A stretch of DNA of 64,000 nucleotides from Octopus sinensis (lineage: Eukaryota): positions 13,702,001-13,766,000 of the forward strand of contig NC_043018.1 in the NCBI RefSeq assembly GCF_006345805.1, given 5' to 3'. The notes beneath the pieces are model-generated. The model was not told where the DNA came from. It saw only the letters and a program-made list of their open reading frames with translations, and searched no databases. Positions 163 through 40,328 of this stretch are shown in pieces. The first letter of the stretch is position 1. Every line of letters begins with the position of its first letter. The position numbers were made by a program, and so were the translations under genes.

Positions 163-382
163 CAACCCTCACGCGGGAAATGGAACGTGCAATCCAGTGT
201 TCTGTCTCTTAAGCTCAACAACACCACACTTACCTTGCTGCTCAGGTTCGAATATTTGTACATGCAGACCTTATCGTTTCTGCAAATGTAATTCTCAGAA
301 TATGATCCATGTGGCTAATAACGGTATACTCCAAACTGTGATAATTTTTCTGATTTTTTTTGTAAATTTACCATCTTATTAA
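163..382 (+). CDS. K1: terminal exon of an agatoxin-like 8-Cys knottin peptide gene (upstream exons lie outside the window)
   Basis: Acceptor TTCTGTATTTACAG ends at 162 (phase 2). Reads NPHAGNGTCNPVFCLLSSTTPHLPCCSGSNICTCRPYRFCKCNSQNMIHVANNGILQTVIIFLIFFVNLPSY*, framework C-x4-C-x10-CC-x5-CxC-x5-CxC. The ORF-track N-terminus MIFCIY is intron sequence. Confidence 0.8.
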
Positions 383-655
383 CGTTCTGCTCTACTGAAT
401 CTTGTGGATAAATGTCATACGTTCGATTGTTTTTATACAAGGGGAAAATCGGTGAGATCACGAAGTCAGACAAAACAAAGGATCCAAACACGCAGCAAAA
501 TAGACTCGACTCCAAAAATATCAATAAGTGTTGTTGCTGTTAATGCTGCTGCTGCTACTTCGTCTCCTGCCCTACTCCTTCTCTTCCTCCTACTACTACC
601 TTTTCAATTTTGAAATTAACTCAACTATAAAATCCTATAACAATATAACACTTTG

Positions 656-661
656 AATAAA
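656..661 (+). promoter_or_regulatory. Candidate poly(A) signal of K1
   Basis: AATAAA about 270 nt after the stop. The same site is present in K2 (10695-10700, minus) and deleted in K3. Confidence 0.4.
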
Positions 662-942
662 CGTCAGAAAGATAGTGAAATATAAAATATTAACGAGCAG
701 ATGTTTGATTTTGTAATTTATCCTGGAAAGAAATTCACGTATGTTGCGCCAAGAAATGAAATGGTTAAAATATGTAAACAATAACCAACAATCATGAGTT
801 TTCTAACAACCCTAATTTTGGACGACAATCGCATCAAATATCTCATTTATGCTATTAATCCGTGAAATTTTAATGAAATTTCAATTAAATTCATTTATTA
901 AACTATTACAAATATTCAGTGCTTTGTTCTTCGTTGTTCTTT

Positions 943-1227
943 TTGTTTATACGTCATTGAACGTAACAAACTCTTTGTGCTTCGTTCTTCGCTGTCCTAT
1001 TTGTTTATACGTCATTGAACGTAACAAACTCTTTGTGCTTCGTTCTTCGCTGTCCTATTTGTTTATACGTCATAGAACGTAACAAATTCTATGTGCTTCG
1101 TTCTTCGCTGTCCCATTTGTTTATACGTCATTGAACGTAGCAAATTCTATGTGCTTCGTTCTTCGCTGTCCCATTTGTTTATACGTCATTGAAAGTAACA
1201 AACTCTTTGTGCTTCGTTCTTCGCTGT
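943..1227. repeat. 58-bp minisatellite, about 5 units, downstream of K1
   Basis: ACGTCA core recurs at 951, 1009, 1067, 1125 and 1183. Confidence 0.9.
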
Positions 1228-1859
1228 GGTGTTTTTTTTTAAAGTTTTGGATATGGAGGGTAAGATTTTACATTGGAGTGTCACACTATATTATTGTAAA
1301 AGCCAGAATATTCTGCAAGTTCTACATTATAACATTTAAGAAAGAAGAAACAGGAAAAAGAGAGATAAAAAAAGAAAAGCAAGGAATTATAATAGGAATT
1401 ATAAATAGATTAGTGTTCACTTCCGGATTCTATCACTCTGTGAAAGTTTCTAGTTCGAATCACACGTGTCTCGAGGTGCGCCGAAGATTTTTCTATTTTG
1501 GATATATTTGGGGTACTTAAGTCTGCTCGGGATTTGGTGCTTGCTTGTTCCATGTGTATGAATAAGTATTTCATTTATATCTCGCGTATGTGCCGCTGAA
1601 GAGGGGAAAATTTCTTGTGAATTAACCCCGAAATTGGACCAATACGGTAATAACGAATTGTTTAGAGATTTCTATCGGTTTGCTTCGAGACGCATAAATT
1701 TAATGGTTATCGACAATTTTTTGTTTCGGCGTAACTGGCATTAGAATTTTTCTTCTGCCCTTATCTTGTAAATTATGTATAAATTTTACCTTTAAATGCA
1801 TTTTTTGATATGTTGGCCAATTGATAATTTTTTTTCCCCAAAAATTTTTTATCGTATAT

Positions 1860-36410: not shown

Positions 36411-36493
36411 GAGAGAATACTATACATTTGAATATTTTGGAACATTCTGCTGGTAAACCAAAATCTAATCTTGAAGCTTCTCTTATATATCAG

Positions 36494-36551
36494 TGCATGA
36501 TGAAGCAGCTGCCCACATTGATCTGGAACCAGTCGATGGTTTGATAAAAAG
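36494..36551 (+). CDS. K4 coding exon 3 (58 nt, phase 1 to phase 2, acidic propeptide)
   Basis: CTTCTCTTATATATCAG|...AAAAAG|GTAAGA. Reads (V)HDEAAAHIDLEPVDGLIK, and AG|A forms the R of a KR site. Confidence 0.8.
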
Positions 36552-39256
36552 GTAAGAATTTTATAACAATGATTATAACTTTTATCGACTATCATGGTCG
36601 ATAAAATCCAACCTAGCACATTGTTCATTTGTGTACATTCAGGTGAGGTCTGAGACCAAAATCAGTGCATAATGGCGGCCGTATCCTGGACACACATTGA
36701 AACACACACCTGTATTATTTCTAGCCTTCATTCCCACGCGCTTTTCTCTTTCGCCGACTCATCTTTCATTTACGTAAGCTGCCTCAATTCGGATTTGTTT
36801 GTGGCCACAAGTTCCCTAATCAAGTCTCGTGACTAGACACCCTGATGGATGAAAAACAACACTCAGCTAAGGGCTTCGGTTCATGAGAGCCATCAATGGC
36901 CAACCAGCTATGGGAGTGGACAATCATAACTACGACAGTTGTATTTATGGTATTAGAGCTGTTGGCGAAATATTTATTCGTAGGCTGATGATAAGTTTGT
37001 CGGTGTATCTGCACTAAATGGTCCTTATTCTTTTAAAATAGCATTCAATAAAGCTATGGTACTGTGAACATATCGATTAGTCTCTTTTTTTAACAGTACC
37101 CTAAACGTAATAGTCCATGAGATTTTTAATCTGGAGAGTCTGATGATCATAACTTCGGTTTTACATGATTGTATGGATTGTCTGACATCTGTTGCTGGAT
37201 TCTTGGCTTCTTTGTGTTGGTGCTGTGTCTTGTTGATACTCGTTTGACATCCCAACGCACAGTACATCCATCTGGGCTTAATAACTGTCTGCAGTATTTC
37301 AACACATCCAACAGCATAAATTATAAGACCTTGTAGAAAAACGCCGTGTGGCATGGTATATCCTCTGTTACTCACTAATCTCAAATCCGTCTTAGTCGCT
37401 ACAGTTTTAGTGTGCAACACTCCAGGGACATCAGAAGAATTTGTGCATAACCGCCTGTCATTTCATTCGTCAGACTTTTGGTTTCGATCGAAGATTTTCT
37501 CCTCAAAGAAGAACCAAAGCATACCATATTCGAATGGATTAACACTAATTTACCACTTGACAAGAACCAGACGGTTCATGAATTGGCTTCTTCTCAATAC
37601 GTACAATTTGTATCGCGTGTCCTCCTTCATTACAGATTTGATAGTCCGCTTCTATAACTGAAAGTCTTTGGTAATATCCCTCAACGATAATCCGGGATAA
37701 TGTTTGAAGCCCTGTAGATAATTTGTGTTGTCCAGTTAGTGTTTGAAGGATTAGAAAATGTTCTCTTTGATACTCTTTGAAACATTCCCACCAGAGTTTC
37801 CAGTTTCAATTCCATTTGAATTTCTTGTACGAAAAATCCTGTAATATTTAGAAATAAGCAGCATTGCAATAATTAAAAACAGACGAGAATACGCATACAT
37901 ATACAAGCACACGCACAAACACACGCACACACATACACACACACATACACAAACACACACATGCACACACACATACACACACACATGCACACCCACACGT
38001 ATCTACATGAATAATGCGACCAAATGGGAAACTCACTTGGGTATTATCAGATATATTGTCCTTCACAGAATATCACCTTGTGTTTTGAATTCAAATAATG
38101 CCAGAGGCTAAATTTCATTATCATCTTATTGGAGATGAGATGCATGGAACCAAAGGTGTTCAGCGATGGGTTCTCTGTGTTTTTCTCATTCCTCGGGTAG
38201 CGATGAATTGCTCCGTGTCTACAAATACAGGAGTAACGGTACATGCCGATGGCACCGCGAGACGAGGCTAATGTAATGATACTCTTGAGTGTGTGTGTGT
38301 GTGTGTGGTGTTGCCTGTATATATATATATATATATATATATATATATATATATATATATATATATATATATATAGATATGCTGTATATATATATGCTGT
38401 CAGATGCAGCACGGATTTTGTCAGTGAACAGGTCGCGGTCTTAAAGCGACGAAAATATTTTGACAAATTAAACTTAAATGTTGAAGTGAATCGAACGGCT
38501 TTTGTGTGTTTCTTAAATGGCTTACAAACACCTTCCACGCTGCCATTGTTTTCGTTCCAGCACACGATCTCAGATCAAATCACTTGCTATGCAAGTACAT
38601 CTCCGTAATATATATATATGTATATATATATATATTATATATTATATATATATATATATATATATATACATATATATATATGTATATATCATATCGAGAT
38701 CTATATATATATATATATATATATATATAAATATATGTATATATATATATATATATATATATAATATCTATATATATATATATATATATCTATATACATA
38801 TATCTATATATGTATGTGTATGTATATAATTATATATATACAGGCACACACACACATTCAAGAGCATCGTCTCGCGTGCCATCGGCATGTTCGTTATATG
38901 TTATATATATATATTATGTATTACATATATATTACAGTCTGCATACAAACATTCGTGTTCTGAGGAATTACATACGTAAATATACACATGTGTATGTTTT
39001 TATATAAACACGTTCTCACATTTCTCTCTGTCTTCTGTGTATAACATTATATATAAATGGATAGACATGTATATATATATTATATATATATATATATATA
39101 TATATAGATATATATATATATATATTATATATATATATATATATATATATATATATATGTTATATATAGTATATATATATATTATATATATATATATATA
39201 GTACGTTTATCTATTTGTTGTGCAAGATTTTTTATGTGATTCGTGTGTTGAAACAG

Positions 39257-39609
39257 ATATTGTTATATTTCGGAATGGTCATTTTGCCAGTTTAGCCAAT
39301 AAAATCACACGCACTATATATTTGGTGTTACTTTGCTTCAGTGATATTTATTTTGTGTCTCTCCTTCTAACCGTCAGCCATTTTGTATACAAAATGGCTG
39401 ACGGTTAGTAAGGAGAGACACAAATAAGAAAGAAGAAAACAAAGGACCACTGATGCGGTCACAGGAGTGTGACGAAAGAACTCTGGCCGAAATAAGTTTA
39501 AGATTAATGTAAAAATAAATAACACTGAAGCAAAGTAACACCAAATATATAGTGCGTGTGTTTTTATTGGCTAAACTGGCAAAATGACCATTCCGAAATA
39601 TAACAATAT
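39257..39609. mobile_element. Foldback/palindromic element among (TA)n tracts
   Basis: Arms ATATTGTTATATTTCGGAATGGTCATTTTGCCAG... and its reverse complement; centre CCATTTTGTA|TACAAAATGG; ~85 bp extra in the right arm. Confidence 0.7.
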
Positions 39610-40144
39610 ATATATATATACATATATATATATATATATACATATATATATATATATATATATATATATATATATATATATATATAATATATATATATAT
39701 ATATATATATATATCTATATATATATATATATGTATGCATATGTGGCGGTGTGGTACGATGCTTGCTCCCGAGGTACACTGTTTCGAGTTGGTACACAAG
39801 TTGCTTTGCGTGAATTACTATTTTTGATGTTGTCATTACTCATATGGTTCAATAATGCAAATATCTGGGTGGTATGCTGTGTAAAGGGTACTCACCAATG
39901 AGCACAGTATGCTTAAATCCTACCATCTGGTAACTGCGGTACCCATCCCAGATGAATCTAGCCTGTTACGATTCATGTTTGTGATTTTAAAAGCACCATA
40001 AATCTACGAGTAGGCTTCTTAGTGTGAATGCCTTCAAATGATACATCCACGTTTATATAAAGATATAGTGTCTCATAATATTGATACTGCTTCTGTCGGT
40101 AGCTTTTGTATTTATAAGTCTGTTCATATTTTCTGTATTTACAG

Positions 40145-40328
40145 AGAGGCTAAAGGAGATGACGTTAAATGTGCAATATATAAATGGTCGTGCACTATCA
40201 AAACAACTACAGTAGATCTTACTTGCTGTGAAGGTATGGAGTGTAGATGTAACCGGTTCTGGAAATCGAACTGCCGCTGTTATGAATTGACATATGAGGA
40301 TATGGGAATCAATCCTCCATCTGGCTGA
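40145..40328 (+). CDS. K4 terminal exon: agatoxin-like knottin mature peptide with C-terminal Gly
   Basis: Acceptor TTTTCTGTATTTACAG ends at 40144. Reads EAKGDDVKCAIYKWSCTIKTTTVDLTCCEGMECRCNRFWKSNCRCYELTYEDMGINPPSG*. The exons total 73+60+58+184=375 nt, i.e. 124 aa plus stop. Confidence 0.88.

Follow-up and report, generated by a model that had tools for sequence, protein, structure and literature searches.

Spiralian CCWamides and arthropod agatoxin-like peptides (ALPs) constitute one protostome family, the hallmarks of which are eight cysteines, an aromatic residue between the sixth and seventh of them (Cys6 and Cys7) and an amidated aromatic residue at the C terminus (Thiel et al. 2021, PMC8557429). 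According to the same study, genes of the family are built of three exons, the first encoding the signal and the last the mature peptide, and a conserved intron of phase 2 interrupts a basic codon of the cleavage site; its supplement describes for Lottia introns of phase 1 and phase 2 and a 20-residue exon 2 ending in IKR. The receptor and the function of CCWamide are still unknown (PMC13311285, a 2026 review), and the sole recognised recruitment of the CCWamide/ALP scaffold into venom is that of spiders. We analysed 64,000 nucleotides of the Octopus sinensis genome (RefSeq assembly GCF_006345805.1, contig NC_043018.1, positions 13,702,001 to 13,766,000 of the forward strand), hereafter called the window and numbered from its first letter, which contain four exons, K1 to K4, for eight-cysteine, knottin-like ("knot") peptides. 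The window is probably a section of a cluster of prepropeptide genes that is specific to octopus and descends from the CCWamide/ALP family.

Each knot exon follows an exact copy of the same 14-mer acceptor, TTCTGTATTTACAG, which occurs at four sites in the window: 149-162 (+), 11149-11162 (-), 28750-28763 (+) and 40131-40144 (+). Tolerating up to two mismatches raises the number to 6, where shuffled sequence gives an expectation of 0.91 and none of 100 shuffles reached 6; the near-match at 9154-9167 (-) was rejected as a knot-exon site because no knot open reading frame (ORF) lies behind it. After each exact acceptor the frame is open, its first base completing a split codon (phase 2), and the exons starting at 163, 11148 (-), 28764 and 40145 all encode the framework C-C-CC-CxC-CxC. 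The terminal exon of K1, coding to the stop over 163-382 (+), reads NPHAGNGTC..CC..CTC..CKC, more fully NPHAGNGTCNPVFCLLSSTTPHLPCCSGSNICTCRPYRFCKC..; it has 8 Cys, a hydrophobic C-terminal tail and no dibasic site. That of K2 (10929-11148, -) reads DRIKRNATPC..CC..CKC..CRC (DRIKRNATPCYEDYCGVNSRPPSHPCCLSKICKCTFFKGCRC..) and combines an IKR site with 8 Cys and a hydrophobic tail. K3 (28764-28974, +) reads DKIKRNVRTC..CC..CKC..CRC (DKIKRNVRTCFEDYCGATIKPLNHPCCSAKKRCKCIPFKGCRC..), and K4 (40145-40328, +) reads EAKGDDVKC..CC..CRC..CRC, in full EAKGDDVKCAIYKWSCTIKTTTVDLTCCEGMECRCNRFWKSNCRCYELTYEDMGINPPSG, with CRCYELTYEDMGINPPSG immediately before the stop. Aligned with 15 to 17 CCWamides, the four exons share 8 invariant Cys columns, and an aromatic residue lies between Cys6 and Cys7 in every copy (FW in K4, Y and F in K1, FF in K2, F in K3). 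A preliminary description of this stretch had reported the four exons, their common acceptor and phase, and the cysteine framework; exact 14-mer search, a six-frame scan and a family hidden Markov model (HMM) found them all again, and position 40328, where it placed the end of the cluster, is the last base of the K4 stop codon. No fifth knot copy was found in the window by six-frame regular-expression scan or by the family HMM run on 3138 ORF segments, the next match having E > 0.5.

K4 appears to be the sole demonstrably complete gene among the four copies. Its first exon (coding part 34649-34721, +; MKTLLVVLCFWYCVLVSNVLTFKL plus 1 nucleotide; donor G^GTAAGTAC, the caret marking the junction; phase 1) is the best-scoring first-exon candidate of its region, and no second copy of it was found elsewhere in the window. 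Exon 2, of 58 nucleotides (36494-36551, +; phase 1 in, phase 2 out), encodes VHDEAAAHIDLEPVDGLIK and the first two bases (AG) of an Arg codon, between the acceptor ..tatatcag^ and the donor AAAAG^GTAAGA. A scan for middle exons entered in phase 1 and left in phase 2 yielded this single candidate in 5.4 kb, against a background of 0.41 candidates per 5.4 kb, few of which end in a dibasic pair. By splicing, the Lys codon and the AG of exon 2 are joined to the first base of exon 3 (AAA AG^A), which gives K4 a KR site. The dibasic KR that had been placed ahead of the knot in K2 to K4 is thus present in the exons of K2 and K3, where the split codon is AG^T (Ser) and the IKR site lies 4 to 5 residues into the last exon, but the K4 exon itself has none, its KR existing only after splicing.

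The spliced K4 coding sequence of 315 nucleotides specifies 104 residues, comprising a signal peptide, an acidic 20-residue propeptide ending in KR and the 8-Cys domain, and an AATAAA poly(A) signal lies at 40431-40436 (+), 102 nucleotides after the stop. The C terminus, ..YELTYEDMGINPPSG, has a terminal Gly with no aromatic residue preceding it. In its three coding exons, its introns of phase 1 then 2 and the position of the second of these inside a basic codon, K4 has the gene structure of the CCWamide/ALP family; the intron phases are the same in two Octopus bimaculoides genes, LOC128250511 (exons of 61, 55 and 193 nucleotides) and LOC128250510. K4 and LOC128250511 also agree in the acceptor immediately preceding the start codon, ATATTAACAG^G, and in the donor GGTA(A/G)GTACT, while K4 exon 2 and the exon 2/3 junction occur identically in the Octopus vulgaris protein CAI9738754.1. 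The exon finder used on K4 rebuilt O. bimaculoides XP_052831628.1 residue for residue (134 residues). With its splice sites, frame, signal peptide and poly(A) signal intact, K4 is predicted to be a complete gene that is publicly unannotated.

Assignment to the CCWamide/ALP family was assessed with a profile HMM of 21 spiralian CCWamide mature regions from the PMC8557429 supplement, searched against 3133 six-frame ORF segments of the window and of a related O. bimaculoides locus (CM046622.1:29150904-29186003, 35 kb, including 4741 N). K4 scored E = 4.6e-10 (37.1 bits), K2 E = 3.4e-4, and two O. bimaculoides paralogues E = 3.9e-11 and 1.3e-10; K3 and K1 gave E = 1 and 5.7, and none of the microsatellite-derived Cys-rich ORFs among these segments scored. 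When the residues were shuffled with the cysteines fixed, K4 reached 38.5 bits against 9.9 +/- 5.0 for its shuffles and K2 20.0 bits against 6.5 +/- 4.2, and in both cases 0 of 300 shuffles attained the real score. Because both exceed their cysteine-fixed shuffles, the homology of K4 and K2 to CCWamides extends from the framework to the residues. K1 and K3 would be members of the family only by descent from the duplication unit of K2: K1-K3 are tied to K2 because their flanks are 94-97% identical, and to K4 because the acceptor 14-mer is identical. The name agatoxin-like, given to the peptides earlier, can therefore be kept in the CCWamide/ALP sense, on the strength of the K4 profile score and the gene structure, but K1 and K3 carry no such signal beyond their cysteines.

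Convergence of an unrelated knottin family on the same cysteine pattern, for instance a conotoxin-like framework XV, is very improbable. Several unrelated toxin families do share this pattern, and residue-level CCWamide signal is absent from K1 and K3. However, K4, K2 and the O. bimaculoides paralogues lie far above their cysteine-fixed shuffles, the organisation in three exons, with phases 1 and 2 and one basic codon divided between exons, matches CCWamide/ALP genes, and flanks and acceptor link K1-K3 to the other two copies. The resemblance to conotoxin framework XV pointed out previously is one of cysteine pattern.

Of 1.84 billion representative proteins, a full HMMER scan with K4 returned only two, CAI9738754.1 and XP_052831630. 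Word-indexed homology searches with K2 and K4 had produced no match; the index evidently misses short peptides, since HMMER then found these two relatives. Cephalopod sequences thus hold matches to K4 in both O. vulgaris and O. bimaculoides. CAI9738754.1 is a 273-residue O. vulgaris "hypothetical predicted protein" whose gene model spans 121 kb. In it, three exons of the propeptide type each precede a knot exon, complete or truncated, one of them that of K3 (residues 149-203, 100% identical in protein); K4 exon 2 then follows with the first half of K4 exon 3, in which one residue of the 29 compared differs. The model also uses the exon-2 type and junction of K2 (EMARS^D.IKR). This near-identity, which bears out the earlier impression of an octopus-like genome, shows that the window is the locus of CAI9738754.1, either in a very closely related animal or in another individual of the O. 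vulgaris group. Judging from CAI9738754.1, O. vulgaris has two or more further knot exons (DNIKRKVRKCYGHYC..) upstream of the window. The first exon of this model maps to the strand opposite K2 and K3, so that the model is a chimera, and for the same reason this exon (MLRRRHSG..) was rejected as exon 1 of K2 or K3. The last exon has its match at 56702-56761 (+) (FVSH.LEYSMALLLQRKWQP, 95%), 16 kb beyond K4, and is unrelated to the knot family.

The second match, XP_052831630, is the O. bimaculoides "uncharacterized protein LOC128250511", 45% identical to K4. The locus around it, the same 35 kb as above, holds three knot exons in three small annotated genes and the start of a fourth gene; the products have 119, 134, 131 and 109 residues, and at least three of the genes include a knot exon. 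The order of K3-like and K4-like genes differs between this locus and the window, so the cluster either has been rearranged between the species or is larger than either stretch. A lineage-specific clustered expansion, as proposed initially, agrees with the at least three clustered paralogues of O. bimaculoides and the at least two additional knot exons upstream in O. vulgaris, and we conclude that this is a real, lineage-specific and poorly annotated expansion of a known peptide family in octopus. The idea that ORF finders miss such genes applies to the O. vulgaris annotation, which fuses the cluster into a chimera, but not to O. bimaculoides, where RefSeq models them as uncharacterized proteins. 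Literature searches on octopus knottin, inhibitor cystine knot (ICK), agatoxin, CCWamide or cysteine-rich venom peptides did not turn up any account of this cluster. Canonical octopus CCWamide comes from a gene of its own, LOC118768477 in O. sinensis, identical to the O. vulgaris transcript of PMC8557429, whose mature peptide does not vary among O. vulgaris, O. sinensis and O. bimaculoides.

Comparison of the window with itself indicates that K1-K3 are young segmental duplicates, direct and inverted. The K1 unit, 1-3868, repeats the K3 unit, 28604-32661, in direct orientation (83-96% identity) and 11310-9969 in inverted orientation (90%). K2 and K3 lie in the arms of a head-to-head inverted duplication, 10710-15854 for K2 against 29210-24452 for K3, the K3 arm (24452-29210) being 82-95% identical to that of K2. 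In a three-way alignment of K1, K2 and K3, the 162 nucleotides of intron before the knot exon are 94-97% identical and the sequence after the last Cys, tail and 3' flank together, is 93-97% identical. Over the approximately 130 knot-coding nucleotides between them, identity is 58% for K1 with K2 and for K1 with K3, and 83% for K2 with K3, which is 3 to 9 times more change than in the surrounding intron and 3' sequence, mainly in the form of substitutions that alter the amino acid. This excess is significant in each pair (Fisher p = 3e-23, 2e-22 and 1.5e-4). Nonsynonymous (dN) and synonymous (dS) divergence of the knots by the Nei-Gojobori method was 0.67 and 0.39 for K1 and K2, 0.72 and 0.27 for K1 and K3 (dN > dS, p = 0.027), and 0.24 and 0.10 for K2 and K3, for dN/dS ratios of 1.7-2.7, and nonsynonymous divergence is higher than flank divergence in all pairs (p <= 6e-6). 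All eight cysteines are kept in K1-K3 although 20-46% of nonsynonymous sites differ. As far as sequence comparison goes, this is the pattern of diversifying selection.

In each of the two arms an ORF, MLRRRHSGTGTRRFCSTCG.DF, lies opposite the knot gene, at 13168-13245 (+) and 26891-26968 (-); it corresponds to the first exon of CAI9738754.1. Beside these ORFs stand a (CA)n tract and a stretch of about 55 nucleotides like the tail of a knot exon (CSSQNTIHVMDN), at 13384-13419 (+) and 26693-26728 (-). This neighbourhood looks like an older, degraded exon of the family.

Recruitment of the CCWamide/ALP scaffold into octopus saliva, with venom or salivary toxins targeting ion channels of crustacean or mollusc prey, would be a refinement of the family assignment and no alternative to it; we consider it possible, though doubtful. 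It would agree with a mature peptide that is hypervariable next to a conserved propeptide exon, intron and 3' flank, and with dN/dS above 1, tandem birth and death of copies and retention of all cysteines. The spider U8-agatoxin, regarded as a venom doppelganger of CCWamide (PMC8557429; PMC13311285), provides a precedent, and the structural neighbours of the K4 model described below are ICK toxins. However, searches of the octopus venom literature yielded no such peptide, a hydrophobic tail as in K1-K3 is unusual in a soluble toxin, and K4 has hardly changed between O. vulgaris and the window. Compared with its relative in O. bimaculoides, K4 has a dN of 0.64 and a dS of 1.28, the latter saturated, hence a dN/dS of about 0.5. 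K4 therefore looks like a constrained gene, for which endogenous signalling fits as well as anything else, while K1-K3 seem to evolve like an arms-race family such as those of venom, defence or reproduction.

Endogenous signalling is likewise a tentative proposal: the copies would serve as additional neuropeptides or hormones of CCWamide type and address receptors of the animal itself, perhaps in reproduction or in the enlarged nervous system of cephalopods. Homology to a neuropeptide family, the shared precursor architecture, the dibasic site, a C-terminal Gly that might be amidated and the apparently moderate constraint on K4 all speak for it, and several CCWamide paralogues also exist in other spiralians, the nemerteans and phoronids (PMC8557429). 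Neuropeptides are normally conserved, however, as is the canonical CCWamide in the three octopuses, and K1-K3 differ at 20-46% of their nonsynonymous sites; the C-terminal W-amide motif has been lost, and the CCWamide/ALP receptor is still unidentified (PMC13311285).

The front ends of K2 and K3 look broken. Exon 2 of K2, of 61 nucleotides (15132-15192, -; phase 1 in, phase 2 out), encodes the propeptide VSPVHQQTGAYVSLSEMARS and is intact. At 15586-15593 (-), however, the K2 arm has a junction from which a 436-bp segment present in the K3 arm (24731-25167) is absent, and because this segment carries exon 1, K2 has no recognisable signal exon in the window. No other copy of the segment and no phase-1 signal exon upstream of K2 were found in the window. 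In K3, exon 1 persists as a relic at 24840-24902 (+), KSISVLLFCVSISYTFSDKQ, with no ATG at the orthologous start and 1 nucleotide fewer, which leaves it in phase 0 instead of 1. It is 80% identical in protein to exon 1 of the O. bimaculoides gene for the 109-residue product and 73-75% identical in DNA over 288-443 aligned bases; that gene, intact and annotated, is the positional counterpart of K3. Exon 2 of K3, at 60 nucleotides (25566-25625, +), is one base shorter than that of K2 and therefore frameshifted. An ORF beginning MSRVLFVCLF.. (25329; 15431, -) was rejected as a signal exon of K2 or K3, being T-rich and of low complexity, with a frame not conserved between the arms and no donor. 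The 5' exons of K1 lie beyond the window edge. The stretch can thus no longer be said to hold four genes: K2 is without exon 1, K3 is without a start codon and frameshifted in exons 1 and 2, and K1 is cut off from its 5' exons. K2 and K3 would be recent pseudogenes, unless assembly errors or alternative 5' exons account for these lesions; the two 1-nucleotide length differences of K3 both fall within short homopolymer runs.

It could be argued from there that nothing in the locus is functional, the copies being pseudogene remnants carried in segmental duplications or chance ORFs in repeats. The missing exon 1 of K2, the three 5' lesions of K3, the repeat-filled region and the failure of protein searches to find a transcript-derived protein are what one would expect if this were so. 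We nevertheless judge it quite improbable, as K4 is intact in splice sites, frame, signal peptide and poly(A) signal and conserved in O. vulgaris, and intact annotated relatives exist in O. bimaculoides, among them the positional counterpart of K3. Moreover, the 8 Cys are kept while the knot diverges faster than its neutral flanks, a combination that decay by itself could not generate.

Beyond the last Cys, the frame of K1-K3 reads on through another 26-30 codons into a conserved hydrophobic tail (283-382; 10929-11028, -; 28887-28974), with a Kyte-Doolittle hydropathy of 2.8-2.9 over 13 residues. This region is as conserved in K1-K3 as the non-coding flanks, and it might anchor the peptide in a membrane, be removed as a propeptide or be nothing more than T-rich sequence in translation. 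Paralogue A of O. bimaculoides has a different hydrophobic tail within its annotated coding range (positions 590-698 of the 35-kb locus). The O. vulgaris model CAI9738754.1 splices out after ..HVANN rather than reading a tail of the K1-K3 type. A bolder proposal, and a rather unlikely one, is that octopuses independently made the CCWamide/ALP scaffold a clustered, hyper-diversifying arsenal for venom, chemical defence or communication, in which K1-K3 and paralogue A are membrane-tethered by the hydrophobic tail. If true, this would be the first "doppelganger" expansion of CCWamide/ALP in Spiralia and a knottin counterpart of tethered prototoxins.

The ICK fold is defined by the disulfides I-IV, II-V and III-VI, one of which threads a ring, and by a beta-hairpin. 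An AlphaFold model of K4 based on an 18-sequence alignment had an overall predicted local confidence (pLDDT) of 65, rising to about 77 in the core, and contained a beta-hairpin at 31-34/44-47; a run with the four window sequences alone gave a pLDDT of 56 and was too weak for use. The best neighbours of the model found by Foldseek in the PDB are ICK peptides, psalmotoxin-1, Magi3, PcTx1 and tachystatins, with target-normalised TM scores of 0.56-0.69 and root-mean-square deviations of 2.7-3.0 A. The K4 model is thus consistent with a knottin, which is compatibility and no proof. The tachystatins of horseshoe crabs bring up host defence, with the copies as antimicrobial or chitin-binding knottins. 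Tachystatin A is the best PDB sequence match for K4 (E 0.6), tachystatins A and B are among the structural neighbours, and rapid diversification with tandem duplication is also typical of immune peptides. Since neither tachystatin match is significant and K4 is slightly acidic, not cationic, as counted from its sequence, a role in defence seems improbable.

In the mechanism that we propose, the precursor would enter the endoplasmic reticulum via its signal peptide, and a cut of the furin or prohormone-convertase type after KR (..LIKR^EAKG in K4, ..IKR^N in K2 and K3) would free a peptide of about 45-60 residues. The freed peptide would fold as a four-disulfide, ICK-like hairpin, with the C-terminal Gly of K4 as a possible amide donor, and would act outside the cell, binding or blocking a receptor or an ion channel. 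The cluster would be under birth and death, with new copies diversifying in the mature peptide by selection while the prepro parts and flanks stay alike, and with some copies, such as K2 and K3, dying.

A number of observations weigh against derivation of the cluster from the CCWamide/ALP family and its diversification by selection. All four copies are known here from DNA sequence alone, and an exact search of a 15-billion-protein collection did not find the spliced K4 precursor. In K1 and K3 the CCWamide signal goes no further than the cysteines, 82 and 51 of 300 shuffles, respectively, reaching their scores. The C-terminal aromatic-amide motif, ..W/F-G-(K/R), occurs in none of K1-K4, and K1-K3 continue into their tail of 26-30 residues instead. 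The Pfam spider-toxin models matched only below threshold: Toxin_9 (PF02819) and Toxin_7 (PF05980) stay under the gathering score for all four copies, at 17.2 bits (cut-off 21.3) and 17.1 bits (cut-off 27) for K4 and 10.5 bits for K2, with K1 and K3 unmatched. PF02819 is present in several canonical mollusc CCWamides. Two of the four exons may be dead, given the 5' lesions that disable K2 and K3. The Foldseek E-values for the ICK neighbours are 0.4 or higher and not significant. An excess of dN over dS is individually significant in one pair only, K1 and K3, and gene conversion of the flanks may yield part of the contrast between knot and flank; even then, selection would still be required to keep the knots different.

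Descent from the CCWamide/ALP family nevertheless remains our preferred reading, and the locus has uses of its own. Intact, diversifying and freshly broken copies stand side by side, making birth-and-death dynamics directly visible, and the copies offer new disulfide-rich peptides for tests on ion channels and receptors. The annotation needs to be fixed, because O. vulgaris fuses the cluster into a 121-kb "hypothetical protein" and the K4 precursor is absent from public protein sets.

The remainder of the window is rich in repeats. Relics of retrotransposons without long terminal repeats lie at 5185-5802 (+), 47620-48015 (+) and 48185-48847 (+); among their ORFs, one matches zf-RVT (E 1.9e-8) and one Exo_endo_phos (E 1.5e-6), the latter followed by a long ORF without a Pfam match. 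A 136-residue ORF at 20053-20463 (-), in the unique spacer between the K2 and K3 duplication arms, has a sub-threshold match to the GIY-YIG nuclease (21.1 bits, cut-off 22.6) and may be a mobile-element remnant. Dense microsatellite or low-complexity sequence occupies 4827-5185, 35416-35868, 49200-52400 and 53000-56200, with many (TG)n tracts. There (TATC)n reads as LSIY repeats and (TG)n as CVCV, and AT-rich tracts also occur; many spurious long Cys-rich ORFs result, none of which scores against knottin profiles.

Among known systems, the closest relatives found are the O. bimaculoides "uncharacterized proteins" LOC128250511 (XP_052831629-31) and LOC128250510 (XP_052831628). As in K4, a W lies between Cys6 and Cys7 of the 8-Cys framework, and the coding sequence is divided into three exons by introns of phases 1 and 2, the propeptide exon stopping within a basic codon; the genes are clustered within 35 kb, and they differ in their C-terminal extensions. 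Because they are highly diverged from K4 in both dN and dS, they are probably paralogues of it and not 1:1 orthologues. The ICK peptides psalmotoxin-1, Magi3 (mu-hexatoxin-Mg2a) and tachystatins A and B share with the K4 model a C-terminal beta-hairpin with CxC...CxC, in structure matches that are not significant (Foldseek E >= 0.4, phmmer E >= 0.6) and concern a medium-confidence model. Conotoxin superfamilies resemble K1-K3 in their conserved prepro regions and flanks, hypervariable mature peptide, invariant cysteines and tandem duplication. The likeness is one of pattern (C-C-CC-C-C-C-C, framework XV) and process only; the signal peptides here resemble those of the octopus paralogues.

Arthropod ALPs and the spider U8-agatoxin, compared here through published descriptions, belong to the same family and have the same framework and phase-2 intron according to PMC8557429, and U8-agatoxin is the known venom use of this scaffold. 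Spiralian CCWamides (LOC118768477 and those of Lottia, Crassostrea and Platynereis) have in common with K4 the cysteine framework and the core CxCN.(F/L)W..NC(K/R)C, the order signal, propeptide, KR and knot, and three exons with phases 1 and 2, the second intron splitting the basic codon. In contrast to the window copies, the canonical CCWamide has an (L/T)W-G-(R/K) amidation motif; the Cys6-Cys7 loop of K4 is longer than that of CCWamide, and K1-K3 have no Trp and add their hydrophobic tail. The canonical CCWamide is a single gene with a frozen mature peptide, whereas the copies in the window are clustered, duplicated and fast-evolving, and such paralogues beside a frozen gene constitute a natural experiment in the duplication and re-purposing of a neuropeptide scaffold.

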